Assembly: GCA_038496445.1 (NCBI GenBank)
Contig: JALMLS010000065.1
Coordinates: 310,001-374,000, forward strand
DNA length: 64,000 nucleotides
Reading direction: 5' to 3'
DNA from: Trichosphaerium sp. ATCC 40318
Taxonomy: Eukaryota > Protista > Tubulinea
The position numbers were made by a program, and so were the translations under genes. Shown here in pieces: positions 6,401-57,320 of this stretch (position 1 is the stretch's first letter; each line of letters starts with the position of its first letter). Under the pieces are notes generated by a model. It was not told the origin of the DNA, did no database searches, and saw only the letters and a list, made by a program, of their open reading frames with translations.

Positions 6401-6961
6401 ATCACTGTCGCGGAGGAAACAGTTTCGGGAGCCGAGTAAAGCTACTGATTGATGGTTATTTTTTTTCGCAAAAGAACTTTCTTTAAACTTTCGTAGGAGT
6501 ACAGTAGTACTACCAACAATGATTTCTAAGGGTTTTTTTAAATTTGTAATCTTAGTACCATCACAGAAGTAGCAACTCGTGTAGGAAAATCGTCTACTAT
6601 GCATAGGACGCATTAGAGGATTAAATAAAAAACATTTGGTGTACGTCGTGCGGTTGGCGCTGTAAATGCCCACTGAGCTGTAGTAATAACAGTACTGATG
6701 CCAGTTTTTACCGTGTTCCACACAGATGCAAAGGTGCTTGCTAGAACGCAAATAAGCACAATAAATGTCAATAAATTATACCGCTTCTTGGCCGCTTTAC
6801 AATAGGCTCTTCGTATTCCACTCCTCTAAGACAAATGTTAGTCTACAATTAATGCTCTAACTTCAATCAACAAAATAATGGCGTAAAACATAATTTAGTT
6901 ATGTTTTAAGCACTTACACCTCATCCGCTTGTCTTTTCCTTTTTCTTGAGGTTGCGATCAT
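3462..6961 (-). CDS. Sentrin/SUMO-specific protease (Ulp1/SENP1-like, peptidase C48), multi-exon with long low-complexity N-terminus
   Basis: [30 protein letters not shown] (catalytic His) and [12 protein letters not shown] (catalytic Cys); stop at 3462. Upstream exons traced to ATG 6961 ([14 protein letters not shown]-like); 5' model is less certain than the domain. Confidence 0.9.
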
Positions 6962-16547: not shown

Positions 16548-19500
16548 ATGGCCAATTTCGATAGTACATTCTCTCCTAGTAGACAAGAGGCTGTTGCTTT
16601 GTGGTCTGATTCTAAAACATTCGTCTGGAACTCAAAAACACAAGGACAACTATCTAAGAATGATCCTAATGTAACACATATCGATTTATTGTACAAACGG
16701 GTTGGTGAAGATGGCATTTTGCTCCTTTGTCAGTGTTTACGCAGTAATACAGTGGTGACACAGATAAACATTGGGTATGCAGCCAGTTTAGCGCCACGCG
16801 TTGTTGTTCGCTTGACATCTGTAATATCTGCAAATCAGTACGCGAGTCGCCTGGAATGGGCGTATTTGTAGTTAATACTAACAGCAATTAGCAATTTGAC
16901 TAGATTATTAATGGCTGGGTGCGCTATTGGTCCTACAGGCGCGAAAGCTGTCTCAGAGTGGCTTGGTTCATCGCGGTGTATTCAATTGCTCCTTCTAGAT
17001 GGTAATTGCAACTACACAACGGAGTTTTTTTTTAATTGCAATTTCGCATTAACCCCGCTAGTTAATTAGTAAACACGATTTGACGCTCGTTTTAGGTAAT
17101 TCTATTGGTGATGAAGGCTGTGGTTACCTAGCAGAAGCCCTCATTAAAAATTACACTCTAGCTAACCTAAGTATCGCTGATAATGAGATTGGATATGAGG
17201 TACGTGTTGTACAGTATTTTTATTGCTACTACAAAGGCAAGAGAACTGCCAAATAAGTCTTTGAAGCATGCTCATTTTAGGTTTCGCGAAAAAAAAACTA
17301 TCGTTTGAGCAGTCACTTATTATCAACAATTAGGGTGCAAAAGCTCTCGCATCGTGCTTTAAAGCAAATGAGTCTCTGAAAGTGATAGATTTGGGTAAAA
17401 ATAAAGTGACACGTGCAGGTTAGTTGAACAAATTTTAAGACACGTGTTTTTTGCGGGTTTCTTGTCTAAAGAGTTGAAAGGGCTTACCTGTGATTAGGTG
17501 TTCAGGCTATAGCAGAAGGTATAAAAGAGAATATGAAATTGGAGGCTATACTAGTTGATAAGCAGAAAGACTCGACTATTCACCAGATTGTAAAACAAAT
17601 GCTTCAGAATAACTTGGATTATCACAGTGTATGCGAGTCTCCTCGCTTTTATAGCCTCTTATACTTGTGACTAACGTGTATGTGTATAGTTGTTAAAAGG
17701 TAATGCGAAGACGAAGAAGAAGTATCCTTTGGAGTATGTCCTTGACACAGCGTGTTATTTCAATCAAAGAGCACTTATTGATCATATTATGAAGCGCAGT
17801 GGAAAAACCCCGCAGGTATATTACCTTTTCGTTAACTACTGTTACTTTTCCTCTCGCCATAGGAATACGCTTACGTTATATTCTAATGTAATGGAATTTT
17901 AACGAGCGGACGAGAATCTGAACCATTTTGAAATGTCGTTTTCTTTTTTTTTTATGTTTTTGCTTGCTGTGATTGACACAACCTCTTTATTAATTGTTTG
18001 TGTTTGTTAGGAGTTAATAAGCCTTGCTATACAAAGTGATTTTATCTATGCTACATCTCACTTGCTTATTGGAGACTTTGATCCTGATGAACCTATCACA
18101 CTTACTATTGCAACAAATAATATCAAAGTAGCGAGATTATTACGTGCTTGTGGTGTCCGAGTGCCACCCAGAGTACGGAGTATTGTTTTATTATAATAAC
18201 AATGTCTTGTACTTACTTTGGCGTAGTTACTGCAGAGTATTCCACCTAAGCATTCAAAGCTAATTGATGTTTTTAAAGTAAGCTAGATTTTTAACATTAT
18301 TTGGTTACAAAGAAAATCTTTGCCAACGGTGCTTGTTTTGACATAATTTTAGGCAGATATGAGGACTATTGAACTTGTAAAGATGAGAATCAGACCAGAA
18401 TTTATAACAAAGAGAATCAGTAAACATGCGTACGATATTTTATGTTTGTGATACAAGTACACTAAGTACAATCTAGAAATACAGTTGAGTGGTTGGACTT
18501 ATCAAATAATCATTTAACGAGTATTCCTTCCGATATATCAGTTCTTACAAGCGCATACTGCATTATATTAGCTCAAAACTTGCTAAAGACTATACCATAT
18601 GAGTTTACTGAACTTCATAATCTTCAAATACTTAATCTGTCAGATAACAGATTGAATACTATTGAGCCACATATTTTGACATTACATAATATTACTGATC
18701 TTGATATGTCATCTAATAGAATTCAAGATATACCAAACTTGGATAGACTTATCAATTTGAAACGTCTAGTGCTTTCAGGAAACGAGATTTCTTATATTCC
18801 TAATACTATCTCAAATTTGGTTCATCTTCGTGTTTTGGACGTGTCCAATAATAGATTGAAGTCTATTTTACCGGAGTTGTCTTTGATGAATTTGGTTGAT
18901 ATATACCTAAGTGGTAACCCTATGACATTGTGCCCAAGTGATATTGTAAAGAAAGGTAGGAGATCTAATTTCACTGTTACTTTGTTAAACAATATTTTTA
19001 CCGAGGACCTTTCTTTTGTTGGTACTCATCGCTAATAATGAATAGGTGCTTCTCGTATCATTCAATATATAAACGATATACAAGTACCAGACCATAAATG
19101 GTCGTCATTAAAATTACTTGTTGTTGGCATGGAAAACGTTGGTATGAAGTGCTTTTTTCTTCAGAAGTTGTTTTCTAATCTTACCTGTCTAAGGTAAGAC
19201 GCACTTAATTAGGCGCTTGAAACATAAAGATTACCCTCGAAATGTATCTACTGATGGTATAGATATTGAACCGCTCACAATGGCTAAAGTACAATTCACA
19301 GTTTGGGATTTCGGTGGTCAGGAGGTGCGCTAAGCTATCTCTTATTGTTTAGTTTTTTTTTTGCTAACATGTTTTTTGTTTAGATTTTCTATCCTACACA
19401 TCAATTCTTTATGAGCAGTCGTTCAGTTTATCTATTAGTATTTGATCTACGAAAGGGTATGAAACGTTTTGATTATTGGCTAAATAAGATCAAACTCGCA

Positions 19501-22500
19501 AGTGGATTCACTTCGAGTGCTGTACGTACTTTTTTCTTTTTTTCGTGCTTTTTTATGTAACTTAACTTCTTGCCTAGGTTATCATTGTCGGAACACATGC
19601 AGATGTTGTTGGAGAAGATATTGTTGAAAAGGCAACTGAACAAATAGAAAATGATTACATGCAAAATGAATGGTGCGTTCGAATGTTTACTTTGAAGGAG
19701 ACACGTAAATTAATAAGTCACTTCGATTTTCTGGCTGGCCTCATCCTTTATTGTACTACTCAATTGCCTAACTCTTTGATAATAGGGGTTCTTATGTACA
19801 AGCATATACATTTGTTAGCTGTACTACAGGTGTTGGTTTTAAAGAGCTTGAGCGTATTCTTGTTGATGTTGGTTCTCTTACAAAGATGATTACTGATACC
19901 ATCCCTGTGACTTATGAAAAACTTAATAATGAGCTTCAAGGCATTACTGACCAATACTTATCTTGGGAGGTATGTAATATCGGTCTATTACTTTCATTGG
20001 GTATAAACCAAGAACAGACTGAATAAAACCAGGCATGAGATTATTTTAACATTGTTACAGGAGTATGCCTTACTCGCATCTGATTGTGGTATCTTACGTA
20101 AGAACTTACCTAGTACCACTCAGTTTTTACATGATGCTGGGTCTATAATATATTATAACGAACCAGGTAACTACACCTCATGTATGTTGAAACAATCTAA
20201 CTTTGTTTTTCTTTTAGAACTAAAGGATATTGTTATCACTAATCCACAAAAACTTGCTGATATTATGGCTTCACTTATATCATTTAAAACAAACTGGCGT
20301 GATGGTAGAATAACATTATCGTCTTTTAGACTTGTCTGGGCTGTAAGGATTTTTTGTTTTACTATTTATTGCCATGTACTGATGTGTTTTGGCACGTGTT
20401 TAGGATATTCCAGAAGAAGCACATGAAAAATTAAGAAAACTTTTGGAAAAATTTGAGATTTTACTTCCACCTACTTTCCGAGTACGTTATTTTATTGTCT
20501 CTTCCTGTACATCCTTTAAGCAAGTTTGTAGAATGGAGAATCTGAGTATATTATTCCAAGTATGTTACCAAATAGAGCTCCTAAAAAGTACTTGATGAGT
20601 CAAGGTCATGTACGTGAATAATTACTTTACCTTTTGAACGTTTCTCATAACTTACTTGTTCTTGTAGTTCTTTAGTATTGCTACTCCAAACTTTATACTT
20701 GAAAGAGTATATAACTTCAAGTTCATGCCACTCGGATTCTTCTCAAGGGTTCTTTCAAGACTAGCTCATATTCCGGGTACGTGCAAATACTGTGTTAGTC
20801 AAACTGTACTTACTGTTTCTTCCTTTAAAGAGATACGGTGCCATGATATATGGTCAAATGGTACTCTAGTATCACTTCACAGCAACACATATCAAGGTCT
20901 CGTTGAGTACAATGAGGAAAAATTTGAACTCGTTGTACTTGTTGAAGTAAAATCAAGCGCTTCAAAACCTTTGAGAGGTTCTATTAAAGTCGGTATGTAG
21001 TATCCTTTTCACGTGTATTCTTATGCCTTTTTTAGGACATGATAGACTCTTTACTAAGCTTGTACAATGCATTGAGAGATTGCTTAATGGTTTTTATGCC
21101 AAGTATGAGGATAATGTTACTAGGCGTGTTAGATGGAATGATGTAACACGTCGTCAGCGTCATGAGGTTCCATATAAAGAAGTTGTAGCACGTTTCATTG
21201 AAGGCCATGTACATATTACAAAAGGGAAGTCTAGAGTGGCTATATATGCTATAGCTCCTGATATTTCACTTAAACATATTCCTATGGTAACTGGTGTCAA
21301 GATTCAAGAAAAAATTGGTGCGTTGTTGCTTGTTTTTCTTTTCAAGGTGTCGCTATGTTGTATTGACTGCTTCTTTTTGTGTAGGCACAGGAAGATTTTG
21401 TACAGTTTATAAAGGTTCAGCTGAAGGATTAGCTGCTGTTGCTATTAAGGAGATATGTTTCAGTGAAAATGATAATGATTTGACCGTTGAGATATTCAAG
21501 CAGTTTCAGCAAGAAGCTCTTGTTACAAGGTTCCTGTTTTTTGAAGCCAATCTCTAAGTGTTACTCTCTATGCTCATTGTTATGTGTAGTGAACTGAATC
21601 ACCCTACGCTTGTTAGGTTGTATGGTATTACTCAGCATCCTCGGTTAGCTTTAGTTATGGAGTATATGAAATATCGAACACTCGAGACATTGTTGTTCAA
21701 TCGTAAACTAAGAGACGAAGAAATTTCTTGGAAACTTCGTTATAAGATTGCTTATGATGTATCAAGGTAATTTATTTCTTACTTACATTGTAAAGTATTC
21801 CATTACATTGTTGACAATTATACTAGGGCATTGAACTACTTGCATAGTAGGAAGCCGTCCATTCTACATCGCAATCTTCGAGCTTCTAATATCTTCGTAT
21901 GTTTTTCGTTTTTATTATGTTGTTTAATGGTTCTCCGTAGCTTGTCTCTATGAATGGTTCTAGTGAGAATGTGATTGCAAAGGTACTATTATTGATAAGT
22001 TTAAGTTGATTAGTACTAAATAGCTTGTACAGGTCTCAGATTTCGGACTAGCACAACATGTTAATACGAGCATGGAACAACGCTTATTAAATTATGAGTT
22101 TTATGCTCCTGAAGTATTAAAGGATGGAAAGTACTCCACTAGGAGTGATTTATATAGTTTAGGAATGGTTCTTTGGCAGCTAGGTAGTGTTATACTTTTA
22201 CTAGTTGTTGCTTATGTTTTTCTTTAGCTACAAGACTTCATCCTTTCGGTAAAACAAAGTATCATACTTACGAGACAAAGAGCCTCAGTAAGGTAGGTTC
22301 TAGCTGGCTCTAATTACTTTAATTTCCTTGATTCTGTATTAAATAGTATAATAGGAAGAACTTCGAGATAAAAAACGTTGTAAAGAATTAGCAGCTCAAG
22401 GGTACGAGTTTGTGAAGAAATTAGTTTTTGAGTGCCATAAAAACAGCGAAAATACCATAGTTGAGCCACTTCATTATATGTTCTCAAAATACTATCCTTT

Positions 22501-24415
22501 TTGCGTGGACAACGTAGAGGTATTGCTTGTAAGCACAACGGTTTAGGGATCTATGGATTAACAACTTGTTGCCTTTCAATCAATCGCCGTATTCAGCTTT
22601 TTTTTTTTATTTTATTCTTCTTATATTATCTTTAAATTGGTCGCTAGTCTTACTGACAACAATTCTTTAGGTGGAGCATAACTTTTAGCCAAAAAGCTGC
22701 CCGTAAAAAGCAAGTTAGCCACGAGCTTATTATCGCTAATGTCATCGAAAAACAACTTCGTCCTTACATCCCAACAAACACTCCACCTAATTTCAAAGAC
22801 CTCATTGGTGCGTCACACTCGTTCCGCAATTCTCTTCCTTGCTCTTGTTTTTGTATGCTAGGCATTCCTGTTTTTTTCTTGCACTTTAAGCTCATTTCAA
22901 CCAGAGAGGTGTTGGCATGACGATCCAATGGAGCGACCATCTAGTAAAGAAGTGATGGTTACTATTCGTAGATTCGCTGGATTCAGACAAGATATATCAC
23001 ATGATAAACACATCCAAGCTCCAGATACCGGTAATTAAGTCTTTTCGTACCAAATGGTTTATGGATTTTATTTTTCCAGGGTTTAAAAAGATTGGTGTTA
23101 ATTGGAAGTTATTTTGTCAAGAACTTGAGCCAGCTTTTGCTGAGGCTGTTCAAGCTATGACTAAAATAGGAGGTAACGTTTGGGTTGGATGTCGTGATGG
23201 TATGGTTCATGTATTCAATGCTGTGGTGAGTGATTACTCTTTGGTTTTTATTGACTGATTTTTTTCTCTTAGCATAAACGCAAGTTGTTCGATTTTCAGG
23301 CTAGTGAACAGTCTTTGTATGCTATTGTAAAAGCGGGTAAATATGTGTGGACAGGCGGAGAGGATTGTGTTATTCGCATTTGGCCTGAGAAGGTAATATT
23401 TTAACGAAACTTGAATTGAGCTAACGTGACAATAGGGTGGAAAATTAGGAAAAGAGAAAAGAGTTTTGAAAGGACATCATGCCATGATTCGCTCCATTAT
23501 TGTTGTTGAAGATGATGGTACTATAAATATAGTAGAATATTTTTAAGGCTTGTTTTCTTACTATGAGTCTTTTTTGTAGGTAATAAACACCACACAGTAT
23601 GGAGTGGTGACGCAAACTGCCAGATTATTGTCTGGAAAGATTTCTTAGCTATGCAAGTTATTCAACTCAAACAACCCATCAATCAAATGTGTAAAGTTGG
23701 TAGTAACATATGGGTTGGTACTTTCAAGGATATTATTGTACTAGATAGCGCTGTACGTTCTGAATATCAAGATAACACCACAAGTTGCTTTTTTTTTTTA
23801 AGTACTGTAGCTTATGTAATTTTAGCGTATGGAGCTGCTAAAGCAGTGGAAAGCGCATAGTGGTATTATAAATACAGTTGTTCAAGTTAAGGGTAATGTA
23901 TGGACGTGCTCAGATGAGGGTATTTGTATCTGGGACTCTAAGGTACGACTTTCTTTCTTTTTTTTTCTTTTTTTTTTGGTTGTTTTCTTTTGTTTTTGGG
24001 TATTAATGTTAACATGTTGTAGTCATTGTGTAAAGTTAAAGTTTTGCATACTGGTGGTCAAACAGGAAATGCACGTATTTTTGCTTTACTTCCTGTACTT
24101 GTTAAAGGCCAAACACATGTTTGGTGTTCGTCTTTTGATAACTCATTGCTTATATTCAACGCTGAAGACTTTAATTTATTACATAAGATCCAAGGCTTAA
24201 AGGCATGTCAACTTAACATCTTTGAGCTTAAATACCCTCTGAAAAAATACAAACTACTTGAAAAAACGTTTTGTTAATCACTGAGAGGTATCAACACTTG
24301 TTACTAATTTAATGTTTAGTCGTACTTGAGAACATTAATATGGGCAGGACACGAAGAAGTATTTTCTGGATCATCTACTGGTGATTGCCGTGTAGCATGC
24401 TGGTCTTATTATTAA
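16548..24415 (+). CDS. Roco protein (RNI-like LRRs, LRRs, Roc GTPase, COR, TKL kinase-like domain, C-terminal WD40-like repeats); many introns
   Basis: N-terminal GNSIGDEGCGYLAEAL-type repeats; LRR exon 18493-18960; Roc KLLVVGMENVGKT, STDGIDI, VWDFGGQE|IFYPTHQFF, IVGTHAD; COR FLHDAGSIIYY, MPLGFFSRVLSRL; kinase IGTGRFCTVYKG, VAIKE, HRNLRASN, DFGLA, APE; VWVGCRDG and VWTGGED repeats. Confidence 0.95.
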
Positions 24416-26582: not shown

Positions 26583-27659
26583 AAGGAACAAAACAGAGAT
26601 ACCATTTACCATCTTTACTTAACTATTTTGATACAGGGAACCATTTGGTCTACCTGTTGTATATTTTGCCACTTCTGTACTTTTCTTAACACTGTCAGGA
26701 AACATACCAATTGATATATTACTGGTATTCTTCAAACCAAGATTGGTGTAAACTCGAAAAGACAACTTCTTCAATGGTTAGTAGAACATCACAGTCAAAG
26801 ATTTTTTAAGTGTTATTTTGTCCGTGTTGGATTGTATTCTATGTACTTTATCTTTGATTTATACTTTTCTTGTATCTTTTTTGAAACCAGTTGAAAACAA
26901 TACTTGAATTTATAATCTCTAAAGTATTCACTCTTCTTTGCTTTACCTTCAAGAATAAGCATGACACCTCTAAGGAAACCTGATTGTGTCATATAACACT
27001 TAAACCTTTCTTCTTGTATACCTAGCATATTATCAGCAAATAAAATACTGGCACAGAACATAAGCATTAAGGGGCCCAACCATGTTTTCGTCAAAATGAC
27101 TTGTCTTTTTTCTGCGAGCTTTGCTCTTCAAAGTAGGACTTTACATACTTTTTGATATGCTTTCAAACACTTTATATATCTTCTCTTGTTCCTTAGACAT
27201 ACACTCTTGAAGATGGTCAACTAAACAATCCTTTAAAAGTCGTTGAAATTCTGCTTTCATCTTTTCTCGTATTTCTGGTCCTTTTTTTTTGTCGCTAAGT
27301 GTTTTGAGTATTCTATCTCTCTTAGAAGGTTCTTTGTGCTTAATGATTGATTTATTGTCTTTTGGTTTCGGGGAGCTCTGAGTTTTCTTCATCTCTCTCT
27401 TTGTACGCTTGTTTTTAGGTGTTGTGGTGTCTGTTTTAGTTAATGCGCTTTCATGTGATGCAAGAGGCTTCTTTCTCTTCTTGCTAGCTGTGTATTGGAT
27501 AGCTTTTGGTTTATGGGCCTTTGGTTTATTCCATTGGTAGCAGGTATACGCATAAGTGGATGTGTTACCCATACCCGTTTTTCAATAATTATCACGTTTG
27601 TTTTCAATCAGGTCGCAAAGTCAGAAAACGACTGTAGTTTTCAATCAGGATTGAAAAGT
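26583..27659 (-). repeat. Left arm of about 1.08-kb inverted repeat (pairs with 36711-37801)
   Basis: Reverse complement aligns near-identically with 36711-37801 apart from scattered substitutions and indels in the intron and promoter. Confidence 0.97.
26813..27572 (-). CDS. Orphan 210-aa Lys-rich protein with N-myristoylation motif, copy 1 (exons 27572-27149 and 27021-26813)
   Basis: A GTATGT..TAG phase-1 intron joins two ORF-track entries; N-terminus MGNTST. Confidence 0.75.
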
Positions 27660-28768: not shown

Positions 28769-30037
28769 CTAAAAGTACTTTTTATGTCGAGCTAAAGATC
28801 CACTCTTGTACATGTGCTACGATCACAATTATTAGTACAGTATTGTGAATTTTCTATGTTCTTTGTGGGACGTACCTTACCGAGCACATTACCTCCTCTA
28901 CCCCACCACTTATACTCACCATGTCTTTCTCCATCCTTATAATAACATTGCATCCGTAGCATACCATTAGAATGGTATTCTTTGTGAACACCGCACTTTT
29001 TACTCATTTTATAGTAACATTGCATCTTAAGACCTCCACCTACATACCACTCTTTATAAATCTTGTTCTTTAGTCCATTTATATAAAAGCACTTTATACG
29101 TATCTTTCCATACTTTGTCCATTCTCTATACTTACCATCAAGCTTGCCATCAACAAAGGAACATTTCTTTACACAAACTTTGTTAAAATATCTACAATAC
29201 TCTCCATCTAATACACCACTTTTCACGTGAGCAAGAACTCTTAGATTACCATGAATATCATAAATACGTCTTTCTCCATCCTCCAGACCATTAACATACA
29301 TAGAATCTGCATAAACTTGCCCAGAAGGATGATATGTTCTGAAAACGCCAACTATTTTTCCTTTGATAAAAGTTCTTTGTGTTGCGAGTTGCCCGTTACT
29401 ATGCCACGTGCTATGTACACCTTCTTTCTTTCCTTTTTTATATTTACATGTAGAAGAGAGTATACCACTATCATGCCATGTCTCGTACAAGCCATGTTCC
29501 TATGATAGAGTAAGAAAAGAAAACTGCGATGAAATGAAGTATTCCTAAATTACTTCATCGTTTTTATAGTTACTGAGCTCTATGAGCACGCCTTTATCTG
29601 TCCATGCTCTATATTCTCCTTCTAAGTAACCTCGTTTATACGTTCCTTCTTGTGAAGGATTACCTGATGCAAACCTAAGTGAGCAGTGAGCGACGTACTG
29701 TTTTTCTTTGAAAAGTAACCAATTGAATTGTCCGTTGCATTACGAACCACCACTTGCATAAACCATCCCGATCACCACGTTTAAAATAGCATTCAGCATG
29801 TTTTATACCGTTAAGGTGCCAAGATAGCCAATGACCATTTTTGGCCATAGATTTATTGAATCTTGTACTCAGCGCAAAGTCACGCGTCAATTCTGGCCAT
29901 TTACGGTAAATTTCACTATCCAGCTCCCAGATGAGTCTGTGGAGCTCCAATGGTAAGTCAAATAGCCTATTAGAGTAATCAGAGAGCCGGGCAATTGTAT
30001 TTTTTAACGTTATTCTTGGTTTAAGCCGCGTCGTCAT
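28769..30037 (-). CDS. F-box-like N-terminus plus MORN-variant (YwqK antitoxin-like) repeat protein, 3 introns
   Basis: LFDLPLELHRLIWEL then about 12 repeats of the type WHSNGQL..Y.NG..DG.Y; phase-compatible GT-AG introns near 29745-29675, 29552-29499 and 28876-28820. Confidence 0.85.
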
Positions 30038-32463: not shown

Positions 32464-33729
32464 TTAATAGGTAATAGTGTGAACACCAGTTAAGGCCTTT
32501 ATACATTTATCAGTAGCACCAGTCCCTTTAAGACAAATAGTATGAACACCAACCAAGTAGTTAACACCTTTGTCTGTAACATTTGTGTAACTAAGATCAA
32601 TTGTATGCACTCCAGCCAATGCTTTGATACCTTTGTCTGTAACTCTTGTATTGTAAAGATGAATTGTATGAACTCCAGCCAATGCTTTGATACCTTTGTC
32701 TGTAACTTTCGTGCCAGTAAGAAATATTGTATGAACACCAGCTAAGTGCTTGACACCTGAATCTGTAACATTTGTGTAACTAAGATCAATCATATGAACT
32801 CCAGCTAATTCTTTAACACCTTCATCTGTTACTGTTGTATAATTGAGATGTATTGTATGAACTCCAGCCAATGTTGTCATACCTTCATCTGTAACTCTTG
32901 TATTGAAAAGACTAATTGTATGAACTCCAGCCAATGCCTTCATACTTGCGTCTGTTACATTAGTATTAGTAACGTCAATAGCATAAACACCAGCTAGTGC
33001 CTTGATACCATCATCAGTGACTTGTTTACAGCTCCTTAAATAAATTGTATGGACACCAGCTAATGCTTTGATACCTTCATCTGCCACAAAAGTATAGCTC
33101 AGATCAATATTGTGAACGCCAGCAAGAGCCTTTACACCATCGTCTGTCACTTTTGTGTATTTAAGGTTAATCGTATGAACACCAGCTAAAGCCTTAATAC
33201 CATCATTAGACACTTTGGCACAATTGCTTAGATCAATGTTATGAACGCCAGCCAAATATTTAATCCCTTCATCTGTAACAAAATATGCTCGAGATAAATT
33301 TATTTTTTTGATTCCAGAAAGTTGTTTGAGGTGACCATCAGTGATGAATGTACACTTGCTACTAAAGGCAATACTGTGAATACCTCTTAACTTTGTAAAA
33401 TCAATATTTACTCTCTTGATGTCCTTATCAAGTCTGAGGGAGTGCACTCCTTGAAGGTACTGTAGTTGTTTCTGTTTGATAGGAAATTTGATGATTATAG
33501 TGTTTGTTTTAATGAGATGAGGCATTGTTTTGAACAGTTTTTTGAGTGAACGTTGTGATGTGATGACAATCTCTCTTCTATTTGCGTATCCCATGTGTTG
33601 TGTTGCGACCATTTTTAACGATTTTGAAGTACGGACTACCAAATGCATAGTTACCTTAGAAACAAAGTGTAGAATGTAAACAATGACTTCAACTGGAATT
33701 TCATCAAAGAATGCGCTGTTTGAGTTCAT
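32464..33729 (-). CDS. Intronless F-box-like plus leucine-rich repeat protein (cassette copy 1)
   Basis: FFDEIPVEVIVYILHFV then about 14 repeats of 21-22 aa, consensus LAGVHTIxLxxTxVTDxGxKA. Confidence 0.92.
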   Translation of the reverse strand: MNSNSAFFDEIPVEVIVYILHFVSKVTMHLVVRTSKSLKMVATQHMGYANRREIVITSQRSLKKLFKTMPHLIKTNTIIIKFPIKQKQLQYLQGVHSLRLDKDIKRVNIDFTKLRGIHSIAFSSKCTFITDGHLKQLSGIKKINLSRAYFVTDEGIKYLAGVHNIDLSNCAKVSNDGIKALAGVHTINLKYTKVTDDGVKALAGVHNIDLSYTFVADEGIKALAGVHTIYLRSCKQVTDDGIKALAGVYAIDVTNTNVTDASMKALAGVHTISLFNTRVTDEGMTTLAGVHTIHLNYTTVTDEGVKELAGVHMIDLSYTNVTDSGVKHLAGVHTIFLTGTKVTDKGIKALAGVHTIHLYNTRVTDKGIKALAGVHTIDLSYTNVTDKGVNYLVGVHTICLKGTGATDKCIKALTGVHTITY

Positions 33730-34058
33730 TTTGTCAAAATAGATGTATCTAATAGATTAGGGGATGTATGTTTGTGTTTTAGAGTGCCAAGTAAACGTAA
33801 AGAGATGTTGTTTGTTTATTCTAAGCATACTGACTTACTAAGACTTAATACACATTCCAGCGTATGTACATATCATCTAGAGGGTAAGTTTCTACTAGCC
33901 GGTGGTTTATTTCTTTAAAATAAACTACACTTGATAGCGAACATAATAGTTTTGACAAAAAAAAACGTGATAAGAAAAAAAAGAGAAATTGTTTTTATTT
34001 TTGACACAGAGACCATGATCAGTCTTGTACAACTGTAATTGGATATTCATTTCAGTAT

Positions 34059-34620
34059 TTATTTGGCAGTGACATCAGCTTCCTTTGAAGCACCACCCCA
34101 TTTGGAGTAGTCGACTTCAAATTTTGGAGCCAATTGGAAGATACCATGGAAGTTTTGTTTTGGCATGTCCTTGTCAAGTTTTGGGAACGCGAACTTGAAT
34201 CCTCTGCTCTTAGTTCTAAAAAAATAATGGTGAGTTGACGTTGGTGAGGCGAAGAAAATTAAAAAGGTTGTAAAGCGCAGATTTTGGAGAAAGACAAAAG
34301 ACATGAACGACCACTTTTATTCACTGATCAAAAAAGAAGATTTCGAAAGTTGTTTGTGCTTTGAGTACGTACTTTCCAGCAGGGATATGACCAAAGTCAA
34401 GGGTAACTTTATCTAGATCTCCAGAACCACCGCATGTCATGACCTCAGAGTGGAAAGGAGAGTCTTCATCAACATCGACGTAAGCCAAGCAGTCGGTGAT
34501 TGGAATTGGAAGCTTGTTGGTAAACTTGACTTTACAACAGTATGTGGTCTTGTCATCGAGGTTTGCTGGTACGTCGTACTCAACTTTAACACAGCCGTCT
34601 TCAACACAGATAGAAGTCAT
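34059..34620 (-). CDS. 134-aa uncharacterised beta-sandwich/Ig-like protein, copy 1 (exons 34620-34373 and 34215-34059)
   Basis: Phase-2 GTACGT..TAG intron at the same codon as in copy 2; mostly synonymous differences between copies; C-ending codon bias. Confidence 0.88.
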
Positions 34621-35253
34621 TGTTTTTATGAGAGTTGTTGTTTGTTGTTTGTTTGGATGATGAGAAATGACTGTATTTTAGAGCAGTGTTAAGCTATGTG
34701 TTTGTGTATTCCCGCCTCCACTGACTACTGACATACTAATGGTAGTTTTAATGTTCACCACTATGCCCACCTATTTTTGCTGTTAACGTGTCAGTACAGT
34801 GAGCACATGCGTAGGGAATATAGACAAACCCATGTTCGTCCATTATAAGTTTCGTCAAGGATTGATTATTGGTTCGCTTCCTACCCACTTCTTAAACTTC
34901 TGGTATGTTTAGAATAGTGCCATTTAGTTTAAACTACCAAAATAAGTCTATCTGTCATATTTCACCAAGTACCAATATCGCAAATATCTTTCTATTTTCA
35001 TGTTACTACAAGTAGAATAACTTCTTTCAAACAATCACGGACCTCGAAATACATCAACATTTTTAACCACGTGGCGTGATATTTTTTTATTTCCTCAAGC
35101 CAACACCTGTGCTAGGGTTGTACATGATATACGCAGACAAGCGTCATAGTATTTGGATAATTATTCACATTGAACTTCTAGAAAGATGAAAACGTCACTT
35201 AACAAGGTTCACACTAGACATCAAACTACAACTGTTCACCAACATACAGCAAC

Positions 35254-35436
35254 ATGCCTTACTACGGAGTTCATCGCCCTACTTACCGCCCTACCCCACG
35301 CCCTAGCCTTGCTTGCGGAGGCGGTTGTAGACCATCAATATGTAGACCTTCATGCCCACCTCCACGCCCAACCCATCCTCCTCGTCCTACAATCTGCCGT
35401 CCAAACCACGGATGCTATGGTTACAGATGCTACTAG
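35254..35436 (+). CDS. 60-aa Arg-Pro/Cys/Tyr-rich peptide, copy 1
   Basis: ORF length and frame conserved with 50867-51049, with many synonymous changes; shared start context AACATACAGCAAC-ATG. Confidence 0.88.
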   Translation: MPYYGVHRPTYRPTPRPSLACGGGCRPSICRPSCPPPRPTHPPRPTICRPNHGCYGYRCY

Positions 35437-36389
35437 CACTATACGTACGTAAGCTATACTAGTTCTTAGCGTTCTAACGCTGATTTAATAGCTATGAAGT
35501 TATGGTATTGTACGCAAACTACTTGAGGTTCTGTGCAAGATTAAATCGTTTAAAAAACCAATAACAGCAGTTTCTAAACTGACGTGCAGTACTGTGAAAA
35601 TCTTCCTTTATCAATAAAACAAAGTTCCTAATACCATTGTACCCAACTTGCTTGTATACGAATAATCTAGGTAACCCACAGACCGTGATGTAGCACCCTA
35701 AACAACCAGTAATGGAAAAAGGTATACTGAGTTATTGTATGTCTCAGTCAAGTTTTAATCAGCCTGCCTGGGAGCAGGCGTCAAGCGAAAAAGCTATGAA
35801 TCCGTCTCAAAAACACGTGATTTTTCAAACCCAAACCAAAATTGTTTATTTACATATTTGATACCTGGTGGCGTTTACAAAGCATATGGTAGCGTCGTTT
35901 TACTGGTTTGAATTGTAGTGTATGATTTTTTAACGCTATAACCCCTGTTGATGCCGTGAGAGCGCTATTGACAGCGTAGGCAGGCGCTAGTTGTAGTGCT
36001 AGTAAATTTTACACTTACCTGTACAATACAGTTGGTTTTTCATCACGTAAAACAACGTCGAACAGTGTTTGAGTCTAATCATACCAATATTTAGCTTTTA
36101 GCCATCGTACCTTTTCTTTTAGCTACCAAATGACTTCTGTGGCTTGAACGTACCACGTACAGTGCCTAGGTAATATTGCGATCTTTCATGCGAAGAAAAT
36201 GGTTAGACGTGGAGCTGACATTAAAAATTTTGCTATCACTTAAGTTATATAAGCCACTATGAAGGACAGTATTGTACAGCAAATAATTCACATTGTGGTA
36301 GATCTACACCGTTAGACAGAATTGTCAATTCTTGCTAGATCTGGTAAAGTGCTAAGAACTCACTCTCTGAATTATTCAGAAATATTAGT

Positions 36390-36710: not shown

Positions 36711-37801
36711 ACTTTTCAATCCTGATTGAAAGCGACTTAGCGATCTTGATTGAAAACAAACGTGTGATAATTATTGAAAAACGAGTATGGGTAACACCTC
36801 CACTTATGCGTATACCTGCTATCAATGGAACAAACCAAAGGCCCATAAACCAAAAGCTATCCAATACACATCTAGCAAGAAGAGAAAGAAGCCTCTTGCA
36901 TCACATGAAAGCGCATTGACTAAAACAGACACCACAACACCTAAAAACAAGCGTACAAAGAGACAGATGAAGAAAACTCAGAGCTACCCGAAACCAAAAG
37001 ACAATAAATCAATCATAAAGCACAAAGAACCTTCCAAGAGAGATAGAATACTCAAAACACTTAGCGACAAAAAAAAAGGACCAGAAATACGAGAAAAGAT
37101 GAAAGCAGAATTTCAACGACTTTTAAAGGATTGTTTAGTTGACCATCTTCAGGAATGTATGTCTAAGGAACAAGAAAAGATATATAAAGTGTTTGAAAGC
37201 ATATCAAAAAGTACGTAAAGTCCCACTTTGAAGAGCAAAACTCGCAGAAAAAAGACAATTCATTTTGAAAGAAAACATGGTTGACCTTAACTTGAGCAAC
37301 TTGCGCTCAATCTATGCTTATATTCTGTGCCATTATTGTATTTGCTGATAATACGTTAGGTATAAAGGAAGAGAGGTTTCAGTGTTATATGACACAATCA
37401 GGTTTCCTTAGAGGTGTTATGCTTATTCTTGAAGGTAAAGCAAAGAAGAGTGAATACTTTAGAGATTATAAATTCAAGTATTGTTTTCAACTGGTTTCAA
37501 AAAAGATACAAGAAAAGTATAAATCAAAGATAAAGTACATAGAATACAATCCAACACGGACAAAATAACACTTAAAAAATCTTTGACTGTGATGTTCTAC
37601 TAACGATTGAAGAAGTTGTCTTTTCGAGTTTACACCAATCTTGGTTTGAAGAATACCAGTAATATATCAACTGGTATGTTTCCTGATAATGTTAAGGAAA
37701 GTATATGAGTGGTGAAATATACAACAGGTTGGCCAAATGTGTTCCTTGTATCAAAATAGTTTAGTAAAGATGGTAAATGGTATCTATGTTTTTTGTTCCT
37801 T
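36711..37801 (+). repeat. Right arm of about 1.08-kb inverted repeat (pairs with 26583-27659)
   Basis: Direct comparison with the reverse complement of the left arm. Confidence 0.97.
36787..37568 (+). CDS. Orphan 210-aa Lys-rich protein with N-myristoylation motif, copy 2 (exons 36787-37210 and 37360-37568)
   Basis: GTACGT..TAG intron 37211-37359; 5 aa differences from copy 1. Confidence 0.75.
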
Positions 37802-40598: not shown

Positions 40599-41156
40599 AG
40601 TGGTGTATAAAGTACTTAGTGATTATTCACTAAGTAAGGTCATGTAAGGCCAAAAAATAAAAGATTTAGAAAATCTTAAACAGGTTTGTGTTAAGTATAG
40701 CTAAGACTTCCAAGACTAGTTGTAACAATGGAAAGTTAAGAAGAAATCTGTAATTACGAGTTTTCATACAAAGTCAACTGTAGATTCTTAAATTTTGAAT
40801 GTCATTTGTTGAGTGACACTTTAAAGAAAGTGCGAAGTCGTATGTTGTGTATCTGAAACTAAAATTAAACGATAAGCGCTTGTTATAGATGAAAGTAAGG
40901 CGTAGTCTATCTGGAGGTGATCTTACAAGTAGATACGCCAATCTGTATGGCTCTTCAGCAATAATAAAATCCGTTATCTTGTTTCTGAGTAGCACTACAG
41001 CGTCTCCTATTTACACGTGTATACTTGTTTCCGGGCTGACATATTTTACGCCTCGCTATCAAAAGAAAGTGCTGGCGGCGTACATACATTGTCTTTGTTA
41101 CAAGCCAACGGTACATACATTTGCTTGACTAAAGTGCAAAAAAGCAAAATATTATT

Positions 41157-41228
41157 TGTCTTTCCCTGGAATCGAACCAGGATCTCCTCGGCCACAACGA
41201 GGTGTACTAGCCAGTATACTAGAAGGAC
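41157..41228 (-). tRNA. tRNA-His (GTG)
   Basis: 72-nt cloverleaf GTCCTTC-TA-GTAT..GTAC-A-CCTCG TTGTGGC CGAGG-AGAT-CCTGG TTCGATT CCAGG-GAAAGAC-A; downstream T-run consistent with a Pol III terminator. Confidence 0.95.
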
Positions 41229-41309
41229 ATTTTGTTGATGAAAAATGGAATTTCGCTAGACTCGTTCCGTTGAAGGCATAAACCGGGTAATCTGGTAGCT
41301 GTCAATAGT

Positions 41310-47373: not shown

Positions 47374-50300
47374 TTATTTGCAACAGTGTACACCTCTTTT
47401 TCGGTAACAATTAAGTCCTTCAACACCTTTGTCTGTAACATTAGGGCAATTGTAGAACCTAAGGGAATGTACATCTTTCAATGCTCTAACTCCTTTGTCT
47501 GATATTGAAGTCCCACTAAGATCAAGTGTATGTACACCTGTAAGTGCTTTGACACCTTCATCTGTCACATTTCTGCATTGACGAAGATAGATGGTATGGA
47601 CGTTTGTGAGAGATTTGAGACCTGCATCTGTTACTGAAGTATAGCTCAGGTTAATAGTATGGACATTTTTAAGTGCTTTAACTCCTTCATCAGTTATCTG
47701 TGCACAACCCCCAAGGCTAATTTTGTATATGTCTTTGAGAACTTTGAGACTGTTGTCTGTAACTCGAGTGAAGTCGAGTCGAATTTCATATACACCCTTT
47801 AGTGCTTTTATACCTTCATCTGTCACTCTTTCACAGCTACATAAGCTAATGGTATGAACACCCTTTAATGCTTTGATGCCTTCATCAGTAATTGCATTAC
47901 AGTAACTAAGGTCAATGTCATATACTCCAGCAAGTGATTTAATACCTTCGTCACTCACCTTATTACAACTATCAAGGTCGATTGTATGTACTCCTTTGAG
48001 TGCTTTAAGGTCGCTGTCATTGATCTTATCAGTACACCAAATGGTTGTAGAACATGCTATGATTTTACGACATCCAAATAACATTGAATGCAATGTGTTT
48101 TGTTCCATGCCACATAATTCAATTTCAGTATTGTTCATAACACCCTTGTACTGTCGTATCTTTAATATATCTTGAACACTGTGTAAATAAGCATGATGAT
48201 AGCCAACAACATCATGTATGATATCAGCCATCAAACAACATGTTTGAGCAATACTGAATCTGTTGTGTACATAGGAAATGATATTCGAAATAATCTCTGG
48301 TGGAAAGTCAAGAATATTTAGTTCTTTGTGTGTTACCACGTGATTTTTTCTGGGATTATTAAGTAAGTACAATCAGACTTAAAATGTGTTGGTAGCTCTG
48401 CTCAGACGTACTTCTTTGTTTGTTTGTATTTTGGCAAGATAACGCCCTCAGAATGTTCCGTACATTGATCTTTTCTGTTTATGTCATTATCTGCATGTTT
48501 ATAGAGAACTTGATCCAATTGTTGTGCTAAACTTGTATTTGATGCGTTTAAAACCTTATCAAGCTGTTTTATTAGTATTTCATGGTTATTTGCTGTAATT
48601 GTATTGAAAACAACTGAATGGTTACTATGATAATACGTCAGCACTTGTTCTATTGATACACCCAAAAAATTCATTGTGACTTGTTGCTGCAACCGTTGAT
48701 GTACTGTTGAACTGTTTTGGGGATTTTCCCAACCAAACATGTGAATTACAACTATGCCTCCTTGTCTGTGCCACACTCACAAAGAGGGAAGAGCAAGTAG
48801 TTTTGGGATTGCGCATATCCTGTAGTGATTGTGTCAATGAGTAACCGCCCAAAATTAAGGGTACCCAAAGAGGCACAAATTTTGAAATTAGGTGTTTTAT
48901 TTAATAGTGTACAGGTTTTATTCCTCTTAATTGTCTACTGAAAGTACTATTTCTAATTCTATATTATCAGTTAATGGTGTATACTCAAAAGTAGCTGAAT
49001 GCTTTACAGTTTGTACAAATTCACTTGTGGTTTTTTCAAAACCACAAAAAAGAGAAAAATGTGATGTTCGAGCATTTGCTTCAATGTTTTTTTTAAAGGT
49101 TATGATATAAGGAACACGTAGAATATCTTGTTTTTCAAGTGGAAGACAAGATACTTTCAACATAGCCGTAGTAAATTCGCAATTAATTTGCCTATAAAAG
49201 AAGACTCAGCGAGCAGACTTAGCTAGAAGAAAAAAAAAAGTAAACTTTGACTGCACGTGCCATAATATCCCTGCAGCGTATTTAACGAAATTGAAAGATT
49301 CTCTAGTAATATCTAACTTTATACTAATAGAAGATTTATGACCTTTTGATGAAGGTTTAGGTGCTGCCATTAACCTAACGCAAAATCAAAAATTAAGAGA
49401 ATAACAAGAAAAAAAAAGTAAGTTGACGCACTTTGCGTTGAATACTTGCTTATAAGCATTCTTATTCAAATCTGAGAACCCTCTATACATCATAGTAGTA
49501 TTATCAGGAAAATAACCATAACAAACATCACCCCACACATCTTTCCACCAATAATTTCTTGAATCCGATTTCTTCCATAAATAAAAAGCAAAAACGCAAG
49601 GTAAACTTTTTTCTATTTCTTTCGCAAGAACATAGTGCCCAGCCATACCTATAACATCAATCAATACCAAGCAAACATAAACAATATAACGTACATGCTA
49701 GAAGCCATATATCAGCTGAAGAGTTGATGTATTTTACTTGACTTCCTTCCTTGTAGTCTGTCCACATGAACTCAATAATCGCATGTGGAAGAAGAAACTG
49801 TACGTCATTATCGAAGCAATACTGAAGAATCCCTGAAGTTGTACAGCATAATTTTACAATACCGTCAATAAGTATAGAGTAAAGTTCAGGTTCACATTTA
49901 GTAGCTAACATTGGTAGATCAGAAATAGGGCCAGCTAGTATGAGCATTTTAGTGAATGATACTACATCTTTGGATTTTATCTATTCGAAGGCAAAAAGTT
50001 AATCGAAAAAAAAAACTGATCATGTGATTTGCACGTGCCCTTTTTAATGTTTCTAAAACGGATATACGTATTTTATTTCCTTCCTTTGCAAGTTCTTGTA
50101 AAGCCACAGAGGTGTCATTCGTCGATAGTACGTTTAAAAGCGAAAGAGCAGATTCTACATTTTCATTTTCATGCAAGATGTAAGTATACGGCTCATCCGC
50201 TTTGAGCGCTTCTAGCTTCTCTGTGAAGTATCTATATAATGTGCTTAACCTCTTTATTGTGTTCTTAACGGTATTAAATGCAATATGACGTACGTGGAGT

Positions 50301-50448: not shown

Positions 50449-50866
50449 TTAAAAACCGTGCATATGAAGGTTTTATAGAGCGCACGTGCGTGAAATAGCT
50501 TCAACGTCGTGTTTTTCATGTTTTATTTCTATTTTCTGTCGTTTTACTAGTACGTCTTTTATATCTTTACAATCACCACTTTTTTTACGTTTACATGGGA
50601 TATTGTGTGACATGTCGAAAAAAAAAAACGGAATAACACAAACACTGTCTTAACTCAATTAAGTTTGGTACAATTGTAGAGCCAAGCCAAGTTGTTGAAG
50701 TGGCTTTATTAACATCTCGCGTTCGTACAATAAAGACATAGCGTAGTTAAATACTGAGAACAAAGTTTCTACAAGCGAGTATTCCGCCGTTCTTGCATCC
50801 TTTGTTTCCCTTTGCTACAAGCCGAATAAACACGTATTGTTGTAGTTTGTTTTACATACAATTATG

Positions 50867-51049
50867 CTAGTAGCATCTGTAACCGTAGCATCCATGGTTT
50901 GGACGGCAGATTGTTGGACGAGGAGGGTGGCACGGGCGTGGAGGTGGGCATGAAGGTCTGCAAATTGATGGTCTACAACCTCCTCCGCAAGAAATGCTAG
51001 GGCGTGGGCAAGGGTTGTAACAAGGGCGATGACATCCGTAGTAAGACAT
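50867..51049 (-). CDS. 60-aa Arg-Pro/Cys/Tyr-rich peptide, copy 2
   Basis: MSYYGCHRPCYNPCPRPSISCGGGCRPSICRPSCPPPRPCHPPRPTICRPNHGCYGYRCY; 52/60 identical to copy 1. Confidence 0.88.
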   Translation of the reverse strand: MSYYGCHRPCYNPCPRPSISCGGGCRPSICRPSCPPPRPCHPPRPTICRPNHGCYGYRCY

Positions 51050-51679
51050 GTTGCTGTATGTTTGTGTTTTGAGTAAATTTGTTTGTGAGTTAAGCAAGGC
51101 CTTGAGACATTTGTATTATGGCCTTGTATGAAGGCATAACATGTTTGTAGAAGAAAAGAATACTAATGTCACTACTCACCAAAGCAAGATTATAAAACAG
51201 CCGTCAAATACGTTTGTTGACTTGGTTTAAGAGCTGGTTTTTACCGTTGAGTTTATGTGAATCAGGTGAGTAGTATCTTAGCGTTTTTGCTTAGGAACAG
51301 AATAGACGCTTGTTTGAGATATTTTGGAGCCCGGTGAAACGTGACAACTGCAAAATTTCCTAGTTTACTACAAACAGGCTATTGACGTTGAGAACATAAT
51401 CATGTAGGGCATGAGAGTGTTGCCAAGAGTTATTAAAACTGTTATCAAAACAAAATCTGAACGAACACAAAGCACGTTAACGTCTATTCTTGTAAGATGT
51501 CAACGCATGGGTTAACACTATGAACGCTTTTAAACACTATTTCAAAGTAATACGACTAAGAAAAATTATCTGTCATTAATCTTTAAACGGAGGTATCTCA
51601 CAAAAACACACGCCTTAACAACGTGTCGAATATCTTCATTTCTCATCATCCACCCAAACAACAAACAACAACTCTCATA

Positions 51680-52209
51680 ATGACTTCTATCTGTGTTGAA
51701 GACGCCTGCGTTAAAGTTGAGTACACTGTACCAGCCAACCTCGATGACAAGACCACATACTGCTGTAAAGTTAACTTTACCAACAAGCTCCCTATCCCAA
51801 TCACCGACTGCTTGGCTTACGTCGATGTTGACGAGGACTCTCCTTTCCACTCTGAGGTCATGACCTGTGGTGGTTCTGGTGATCTCGACAAAGTCACCCT
51901 TGACTTTGGTCACATCGCCGCTGGAGGGTACGCAAACAGTTTTTTTTACGTTTGTTACAAAATGGCACTTTCATTCTTTGAACAAAAAACGACTATTGCC
52001 AATTCTTTTCTCATATTTCCGGTTGTTTTTACAGCGTACTAATACTTTTTAGATGCAAGTCCAAAGGATTCAAGTTTGCATTCCCAAAACTCGACAAGGA
52101 CATGCCAAAACAAAACTTCCATGGTATCTTCCAATTGGCTCCTAAATTTGAGGTCGATTACTCCAAATGGGGTGGTGTTTCAAAGGAAGCCGATGTCACT
52201 GCCAAGTAA
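51680..52209 (+). CDS. 134-aa uncharacterised beta-sandwich/Ig-like protein, copy 2 (exons 51680-51927 and 52053-52209)
   Basis: 126/134 identical to copy 1; identical exon lengths (248 and 157 nt). Confidence 0.88.
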
Positions 52210-52430
52210 ACAACCTTAATGTAAAACGTATTATCTGTGCTTAGTGGTCGATACCTTGTATTGAAATAAAAAAATCAGTTAAAATATCACGTGATATTTT
52301 TTCAACTTTTTTACGCTTCTTTCAGCAGTATAGCTCTGATTGTCAACTCTCGTCAACCTCCGTTACTTTTTTGTATTCAGTAACCAGCTTGGGACGGCAA
52401 TTCGGGTCATCTGATCTATTTAAAGAAAAA

Positions 52431-53602
52431 ATGAATGAAAACAGCGCATTCTTTGACGAAATACCTGTTGAAGTTATTGTTTATGTTTTACAGTTTGTTT
52501 CGATGTTATCTATGCATTCTGTTGTACGTACATCTAAATTGCTTCAAAACATTGCACAACAGCATATGGGATATGCAAACAGGAGGTATATCTTTATAAA
52601 CAAGGAAAAAAAGCTTAAAAAGCTATTTATGACAGCACCTCATCTCATCAAAGAAAATATGATTGTTATCAAATTTTCAGTTCATCAACGGCACTTAAAG
52701 TACTTACAAGGAGCTTATGCACTTGAATTACATAAAAGGCTAGTTAAAATTGACTTTACAGACTTTAGGGTAGATGGGATAGACTTTAGAGATTGTAAGT
52801 CAGACGTTACTGATGATCACCTTAAACAACTTTATGGAATTAGAAGAATAAACCTATATCAGAACAGAGATAAAGGCATTAAAGCATTGGCTGGCATTCA
52901 TACTATACACTTAAATTATTGTCAGTACATTACAGATGAAGGTGTTAAAGCATTGGCTGGTGTTCATACAATAAGCTTATGTAATTGTAAGCGTATTACA
53001 GACAAAGGTGTTAAACAACTGAAAGGTGTGCATACAATTGGTTTAAGCCATACTCAAGTCTCAGATGAAGGCATTAAACGATTGAGAGGTGTTCATTCAA
53101 TCAATCTTGTAGGTACACATGTTACAGACAAAGGCATTAAAGCATTGGCTGGCGTTCATACCATAAGCTTAAAAGACTGTCATTACATTACGGATGAAGG
53201 TGTTAAAGCAGTGGCTGGTGTTCATACAATAAGTTTATGTAATTGTAAGAGTATTACAGACAAAAGTGTTAAACGGCTGAAAGGAGTGCATACGATTAAT
53301 CTTGCTTATACACGTGTTACAGATGAAGCAATGTGACTGACAAAGGTGTTAAATCATTATCAGGAGTGCACACAATTTGTTTAGGTATTAATGTGACAGA
53401 CAAAGGTATAAAAGCATCGAAAGGTGTTCATTTAATTGAAACTTCTTATTGTGTTAATATTACTGTAAAGTGTATTAAATCGCTTGCAAATGATGGAGTA
53501 ATTTATATTTCACATCCAATCACACGTGCTTTACTTAAATCACTTGGTATTAGTGAAGAGCTGTATTGGTTATTCTTCCAGGAGCTATTCAATGATTACT
53601 AA
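52431..53602 (+). pseudogene. F-box-like plus LRR gene (cassette copy 2), frameshifted at about 53331
   Basis: MNENSAFFDEIPVEVIVYV matches copy 1; frame breaks at ..VTDEA|(N)VTDKG, with repeats continuing in another frame to 53602; the truncated product could still be expressed. Confidence 0.75.
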
Positions 53603-57226: not shown

Positions 57227-57320
57227 TATACCGCTTCTTGGCCGCTTTACAATAGGCTCTTCGTATTCCGCTCCTCTACGACAAATGTTAGTCTACAATT
57301 ACTGCGCTAACTTCAAGCAA
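57227..57320 (-). repeat. 94-bp dispersed copy of SENP exon 2 and the adjacent intron end (6777-6870)
   Basis: 89/94 identical, same orientation, 50450 bp apart. Confidence 0.92.

Follow-up and report, generated by a model that had tools for sequence, protein, structure and literature searches.

A divergent gene pair in Trichosphaerium encodes an undescribed Ig-like domain and an arginine-proline-rich peptide within a duplicated three-gene block

What is a pair of small and dissimilar genes, lying head to head and present twice, doing in the genome of the amoeba Trichosphaerium? The pair lies in a window of 64,000 nucleotides (the whole stretch of DNA analyzed here, positions 310,001 to 374,000 of contig JALMLS010000065.1), which is eukaryotic, intron-rich, and 36.9% GC. 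The published Trichosphaerium draft has 37.69% GC in 710 scaffolds and contains many F-box and MORN genes (PMC10521059). A preliminary description had proposed that a gene for a 134-aa protein and a gene for a 60-aa peptide constitute a two-gene system, with a second, inverted copy at 50867-52209. We recovered the same gene models in both places, referred to here as copies A and B.

In copy A, the 134-aa gene is encoded on the minus strand, starting at the ATG at 34620, with exon 1 at 34373..34620, an intron of 157 nt at 34216..34372, and exon 2, which ends with the stop codon, at 34059..34215; the 60-aa peptide gene lies on the plus strand at 35254..35436. In copy B, the strands are exchanged: exon 1 (51680..51927), an intron of 125 nt (51928..52052), and exon 2 with its stop codon (52053..52209) are on the plus strand, and the peptide gene, coding for a Cys-rich isoform with 11 Cys, is on the minus strand at 50867..51049. 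Both introns are GT-AG introns in phase 2. The complete ORF of MMETSP Transcript_26115 (P0001) encodes a protein that is letter-for-letter equal to the spliced copy B model; therefore, the copy B 134-aa gene is transcribed and spliced as modeled. This transcript bears out the copy B intron, and the copy A intron occupies the same position. P0001 was the one protein returned when exon 1 was searched against the protein collection, and exon 1 of copy A is identical to it at 78/82 positions. For all searches with the 134-aa protein, window exons were queried one by one, and P0001 served as the full-length query. The copy A 134-aa protein and both peptides had no entry in the protein collection searched. 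Since 60-aa ORFs usually fall below transcriptome ORF cut-offs, this absence is only weakly informative with respect to the peptides.

Recounting the identities between the two copies gave the values of the preliminary description, 126/134 for the larger protein and 52/60 for the peptide. The preference for C-ending codons also held in both genes: C is used at 62-77% of two-fold codons in the cassette genes, compared with 35% for a set of 12 other ORFs of the window (p 0.004 to 4e-5), a codon usage of the kind expected of well-expressed genes. Consistent with the proposed lack of signal peptides, simple hydropathy analysis (not SignalP) revealed no hydrophobic N-terminal stretch in the 134-aa protein or in the peptides, whose maximum 9-residue hydropathy is 0.6-0.8.

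Strong purifying selection had also been suggested, and a dN/dS comparison of copies A and B upheld this for most of the pair but not for the beginning of the peptide. The 134-aa gene showed a pS of 0.32 and a pN of 0.04 (dN/dS 0.10, p 2.5e-11), and codons 21-60 of the peptide gene were similarly constrained (pS 0.27, pN 0.02, dN/dS about 0.07, p 0.0002). Codons 2-20, in contrast, differ by 11 replacement changes and not a single silent one (p 0.049, for a split chosen post hoc), with heterogeneity between the two segments at p 0.0014. Four of eight peptide replacements yield a Cys in copy B (V6C, T10C, T14C, and T40C relative to copy A), each through two base changes. Conservation starts just 5' of the peptide ATG and stops at its stop codon, and the peptide frame has the lowest pN/pS among the six frames, which together argue that the peptide ORF is real. 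An overlapping, protein-like open frame in +1 was rejected as a gene, as its pN/pS is 0.99, it has no start in copy B, and its stops differ between copies.

The duplicated unit proved to be larger than the two genes originally described. In both copies, the 134-aa gene is followed downstream by an F-box/LRR-type gene, on the minus strand at 32464..33729 in copy A (LRR_6, E 4e-27; the F-box motif was judged by eye) and on the plus strand at 52431..53336 in copy B. These two genes are identical at 73/113 positions and are mutual closest relatives within the window, and the duplicated block thus comprises three genes. Because the three were duplicated together, the linkage of the pair in A and B represents one duplication event and is not independent evidence of an association. 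The copy B F-box/LRR gene reaches its stop at 53336, and LRR units go on in another frame at 53327-53599, which could reflect a frameshift, a short intron, or a mistake in the assembly. A ACGTGATA motif is present upstream of both F-box/LRR genes (33965-33972 and 52289-52296), in an intergenic region that is otherwise unalignable (local p 0.14).

Silent sites of the F-box/LRR gene are saturated, with a codon identity of 47% vs 45% expected, whereas same-residue codon identity is 0.80 in the 134-aa gene and 0.84 in the peptide gene, vs 0.44 expected at saturation. As had been noted for the introns, no alignment between copies could be obtained for the introns or for either outer flank (z -0.7 to 0.8). 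Therefore, the saturated F-box silent sites, the intron, and the flanks indicate an old duplication, after which the pair was kept alike far more than its neighbor. Strong constraint may account for this likeness, or gene conversion acting across the inverted copies, or the two together; with two copies, these cannot be told apart. Copy A sits inside a further inverted duplication, which is younger, with 92% identity (26583-27659 vs 36712-37801). This second duplication holds a 143-aa basic ORF and part of another ORF; the 143-aa ORF has no Pfam match and is under purifying selection (pS 0.11, pN 0.012).

Several other features of the window were recorded. Intronless MORN-repeat and F-box/LRR-type genes surround the cassettes (28792-29490, 32464-33729, 47374-48372, and 52431-53336), and in Trichosphaerium no other domains of putative giant-virus origin are as common as F-box and MORN (PMC10521059). 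A direct repeat of 94 nt, 95% identical and with copies 50 kb apart (6777-6870 and 57227-57320), has unrelated flanks and no Rfam match, and could possibly be a small mobile element or an RNA gene. A tRNA-His (GTG) gene is located at 41156-41229 on the minus strand. Genes with 15-nt Pro/Thr mucin-like repeats at 54011-55009 (minus strand) and 63165-63692 (plus strand) probably encode related membrane proteins, and the spliced gene pieces at 18466-24200, in which LRR stretches occur along with GTPase-like and kinase-like ones, resemble, by eye, a Roco-type kinase.

The head-to-head layout and the short spacer were preserved through the single duplication event, and remeasuring the gap between the two ATGs confirmed the reported 633 nt in copy A and 630 nt in copy B, near-equal lengths that owe partly to shared descent with offsetting indels. 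The proximal leaders were also conserved, as initially described. That of the 134-aa gene (34621..34710 on the minus strand in copy A, 51596..51679 on the plus strand in copy B) is identical at 66/83 positions (z 11) and contains a TCATT motif, which may act as an initiator, and a CAA-rich 5' part. Directly 5' of the peptide ATG stands an invariant stretch of 13 nt (35241..35253 on the plus strand of copy A). The CAA-rich leader is not specific to the cassette, with similar ones found in three fused paralogue transcripts described below (L001-L003). The middle of the spacer, previously considered unalignable, is instead weakly alignable: global alignment gave a z of 3.4, and local alignment against dinucleotide shuffles identified a block of ~95 nt (p 0.006) at 34913..35008 in copy A and 51292..51383 in copy B. 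Measured from the ends of this block, the 134-aa ATG is 388 nt away in both copies, and the peptide ATG is 246 nt away in copy A and 243 nt away in copy B. As the block neither matches Rfam nor folds unusually as RNA, a DNA cis-element is its simplest reading. We regard it as a candidate shared cis-element that would fit a bidirectional promoter, for which it is the strongest, if indirect, evidence, and, judging from sequence comparison, we find it reasonably likely that the two genes share a promoter and are co-expressed. A 23-nt match ~200 nt 3' of both peptide stops (35632-35654 and about 50656-50678), not significant at p 0.21, is a possible 3' end element.

We next turn to the proteins themselves. 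The 134-aa protein consists of an Ig-like domain that has not been described before and that here stands alone; we name it Z. Only three other real matches to Z were found among 1.84 billion representatives, and a profile search added none. In the proteins where Z is fused to other domains, it is always C-terminal and is 57-63% identical to the window Z: it follows an unknown 120-aa domain in P0002, a ricin-B trefoil in P0003 (E 5e-26), P0007, and P0009, two copies of a beta-rich domain of no known family, X, in P0004, and X plus ricin-B in P0008. The Z-bearing proteins form four clusters; all stem from intronless transcripts in MMETSP or in a single JGI sample (3300016894), and none has a leader. 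The fused transcripts probably come from the same organism as the window. The ricin-B-Z fusions retain three QxW-type motifs and lack signal peptides. P0003 and the window Z gene share their first four residues and have a matching ATG context, which suggests the gain or loss of a lectin domain just past the start. No ricin-B beta-trefoil was detected in the window 134-aa protein; it is present in P0003 and P0008. Z is thus no module reserved for the peptide: at least four further architectures also have it as their C-terminal part. A six-row tree that included copy A did not resolve the order of the fusion events. Two further candidate relatives, P0005 and P0006, are repetitive proteins that matched over short stretches only and were rejected as chance matches. 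Domain X is itself undescribed; it is beta-rich, spans ~90 aa, occurs twice in P0004 (L001 56-700) and once in P0008 (L002 70-370), with E 2e-14 and 7e-12, and has no Pfam or PDB match. By eye, it may resemble FAIM-type sandwiches.

In agreement with the preliminary description, neither protein of the pair could be assigned to a known family in Pfam, NCBIfam, or PDB. Z had no Pfam match at E values up to 10 and none in NCBIfam or among PDB sequences, family profile included, and it was not found among metagenome, viral, or prokaryotic contigs; contig and structure searches gave no indication of a viral origin. AlphaFold modeling from seven rows predicted a beta-sandwich at low confidence (pLDDT 56). 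In Foldseek searches with this model, CBM2 was the top row (E 0.0075, 18% identity, VIA Z 5.5), tied with unrelated sandwiches, and the model also weakly matched transglutaminase C-terminal, TRAP-beta, and CARDB/DUF11 domains (TM up to 0.59, Z values up to 6.2). Atlas features of the domain scored 0.89-0.91 to DUF11/CARDB clusters. These predictions favor a beta-sandwich fold for Z and do not assign it to any of these families. Invariant Cys, Asp, Glu, His, and Met residues cluster within residues 44-68 of all Z domains (Cys44, an acidic loop at 49-52, His57, and Met61), and a single invariant Trp, W122, is located near the C-terminus. A role for Z in maturing the peptide, suggested earlier, found no support, as neither a catalytic motif nor a family match indicates an enzyme of that kind. 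The window Z carries a charge of -4 to -5 and the peptide one of +8 to +9; since the Z of P0004 is neutral, charge pairing is not a trait of the Z family.

The copy A peptide contains 15 Pro, 9 Arg, 7 Cys, 6 Tyr, and 6 Gly residues, for a charge of about +9. Both peptides combine seven or eight Arg-Pro units with a Cys-Gly-Gly-Gly-Cys core and Tyr-rich ends, and both lack Asp, Glu, Lys, Gln, and Trp. Copies A and B have 7 vs 11 Cys of 60 residues (12-18%), none of them adjacent, and 6 Tyr. No homologue was found among 5.8 billion proteins, in a search covering candidates of 33-105 aa, with longer kin outside its scope, and there was no match in Pfam (E up to 0.1), NCBIfam, PDB sequences, or viral contigs. 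Metallothioneins have ~30% Cys, arranged in clusters, and almost no aromatic residues. The peptides, with 12-18% Cys, 6 Tyr, no adjacent Cys, and no Pfam match, do not conform to this type, which weakens the earlier proposal of a metal-binding module. The proposal of a cross-linked structural system was narrowed: transglutaminase cross-links are excluded because the peptides contain neither Gln nor Lys.

How might these observations fit together? The explanation that we prefer, and hold tentatively, is that the locus encodes a co-regulated divergent pair of abundant leaderless proteins in which the peptide would form a disulfide-cross-linking matrix and Z would be its assembly module. An old inverted duplication would have copied the block of F-box/LRR-type, Z, and peptide genes, and neutral DNA would then have diverged to saturation, whereas both genes of the pair stayed alike, as did their leaders and the central spacer block. 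One shared promoter would drive both genes in opposite directions in the same cell state, and the products would be abundant proteins without signal peptides. Z would be a lineage-restricted Ig-like beta-sandwich, to which an assembly or anchoring role is suited because it is a constant C-terminal module behind interchangeable heads (ricin-B and two unknown beta-rich domains). The peptide would be a basic, mostly unstructured Arg-Pro chain with Cys and with Tyr-rich ends that cross-links by disulfide, perhaps also by dityrosine, and packs around or stiffens acidic Z assemblies, for example in a cortex or coat, with copies A and B supplying low-Cys and high-Cys versions. In this reading, Z and the peptide would belong to the same structure, cross-links would form, and the two would be in physical contact. 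It seems improbable that the multi-copy cassette makes up an undescribed intracellular or coat polymer in which Z displays swappable heads, the peptide cross-links, and Cys isoforms tune stiffness.

Co-regulation could also exist without any physical partnership, in a leaderless defense or feeding program with Z in cytoplasmic lectin-type effectors and the peptide as a cationic Pro/Arg/Cys antimicrobial that leaves the cell with no signal peptide. Fungal cytoplasmic ricin-B lectins are defense proteins (PMC4082614), the ricin-B-Z fusions are leaderless with their three QxW-type motifs retained, and the peptide has the charge and the Arg-Pro units for such a role; the excess of replacements in its codons 2-20 (11 to 0, p 0.049, post hoc) fits positive selection. 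However, these peptide changes are directional to Cys and not scattered, the peptide has no leader, processing site, or antimicrobial family match, and stand-alone Z has no lectin domain and one Trp only. We consider such a program rather unlikely. A dedicated two-component module, in which Z is a binding partner, chaperone, or maturation factor of the peptide or both handle metal (Cys44, 49-52, His57, and Met61 in Z; Cys/His in the peptide), would draw on the cluster of invariant residues (Cys, Asp, Glu, His, and Met) common to all Z domains, on the opposite charges, and on the fixed linkage. Yet these residues are just as invariant where Z is fused to a lectin, neither sequence nor fold matches an enzyme or a metal protein, and the Cys share of the peptide is far under that of metallothioneins, with six Tyr and a Cys count that differs by four between copies, all of which leaves this module very unlikely in our view.

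The two genes might instead be unrelated neighbors, highly expressed orphan genes that came to lie head to head by chance, were co-duplicated with the F-box/LRR gene, and have been conserved separately with the help of gene conversion. The duplicated block does contain three genes, Z does occur in four other architectures, and the region does harbor a second, younger inverted duplicate; moreover, the conserved spacer block could serve just one of the genes, and the likeness in spacer length derives partly from shared descent and offsetting indels. Against this, the members of the pair, unlike the F-box gene, both show little silent divergence, a codon bias, and leaders that are conserved, and the distance of the spacer block is held to both ATGs. 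We judge chance neighborhood to be unlikely as well.

Keratin-associated and small proline-rich (SPRR) proteins are leaderless and Cys/Pro-rich, with Cys-Arg-Pro-Ser-like repeats and Gly/Tyr-rich ends, and build an intracellular cross-linked matrix. The peptide resembles these keratin-associated and cornified-envelope proteins in composition, a likeness that is at most convergent; it differs from them in having no Pfam match, far fewer Cys, no Gln or Lys, and an amoeba host. In arrangement, the pair recalls the silkmoth chorion A/B and HcA/HcB genes, small structural genes that lie head to head on a shared promoter; these promoters are ~330 nt long and, in Hc pairs, over 90% identical (PMC4639761). 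Both systems consist of small genes multiplied as head-to-head pairs, with low- and high-cysteine classes and coding regions that are much more alike than the flanks. However, chorion partners belong to one superfamily and are secreted into the eggshell, whereas the proteins described here have unrelated folds and no leader, and their spacer of 630 nt is patchily conserved; there is no sequence homology. Among amoebozoans, the closest precedent for this layout is the sigN family of Dictyostelium, in which small Cys/Gly/Ser-rich proteins are encoded by gene pairs that are inverted and divergent and share intergenic promoters (PMC2257962). Like the cassette, sigN is lineage-restricted and small and Cys-rich, in inverted pairs, but its pairs are paralogue-paralogue pairs of Arg-poor proteins found on or outside cells rather than an Arg/Pro peptide with an Ig-like domain, and no homology was found.

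For Z, P0003 and P0008 resemble the fungal cytoplasmic ricin-B lectins and chimeras in joining a leaderless ricin-B trefoil to a second domain (PMC4082614), but the second domain of these Z paralogues is not a known protease or pore-former, and the window Z has no lectin. The beta-sandwich predicted for Z would place it in the fold class of the CBM2/CBM49, CARDB/DUF11, and transglutaminase-C domains. Among them, the CBM2/CBM49 modules, which include those of the Luke cyst-wall lectins of Acanthamoeba, have two to four conserved binding Trp, and the Luke lectins carry a signal peptide (PMC6541295). Z differs from these families in that there is no sequence match and in its one Trp, its lack of a signal peptide, and its invariant acidic His/Met loop, which is unseen there. 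Two other known types do not fit: penaeidin/arasin-type Pro/Arg Cys antimicrobials, as the peptide has no signal peptide and no Pfam, PDB, or protein-database match, and an aegerolysin/MACPF two-component pore former, as there is no Pfam or fold match to aegerolysin and the partner is a 60-aa peptide.

The pair was found in no other organism searched, and both of its proteins are undescribed. Small genes duplicated as divergent pairs are a known arrangement; here, the pair joins two proteins of unrelated folds. Z is the defining part of a new family of modular, leaderless proteins; their heads can be swapped, and one of these is a ricin-B lectin. If the two genes are not co-expressed and their products not cross-linked, the locus would be a pair of orphan genes inside a three-gene duplication. 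If the polymer reading is true, the pair would be an amoebozoan counterpart of the keratin/keratin-associated or chorion systems, built from unrelated parts. Should co-expression and cross-linking be confirmed, the pair would open a molecular route into the coat or cortex of a testate marine amoeba and would supply a compact candidate for a bidirectional promoter to a lineage that has no genetic tools.
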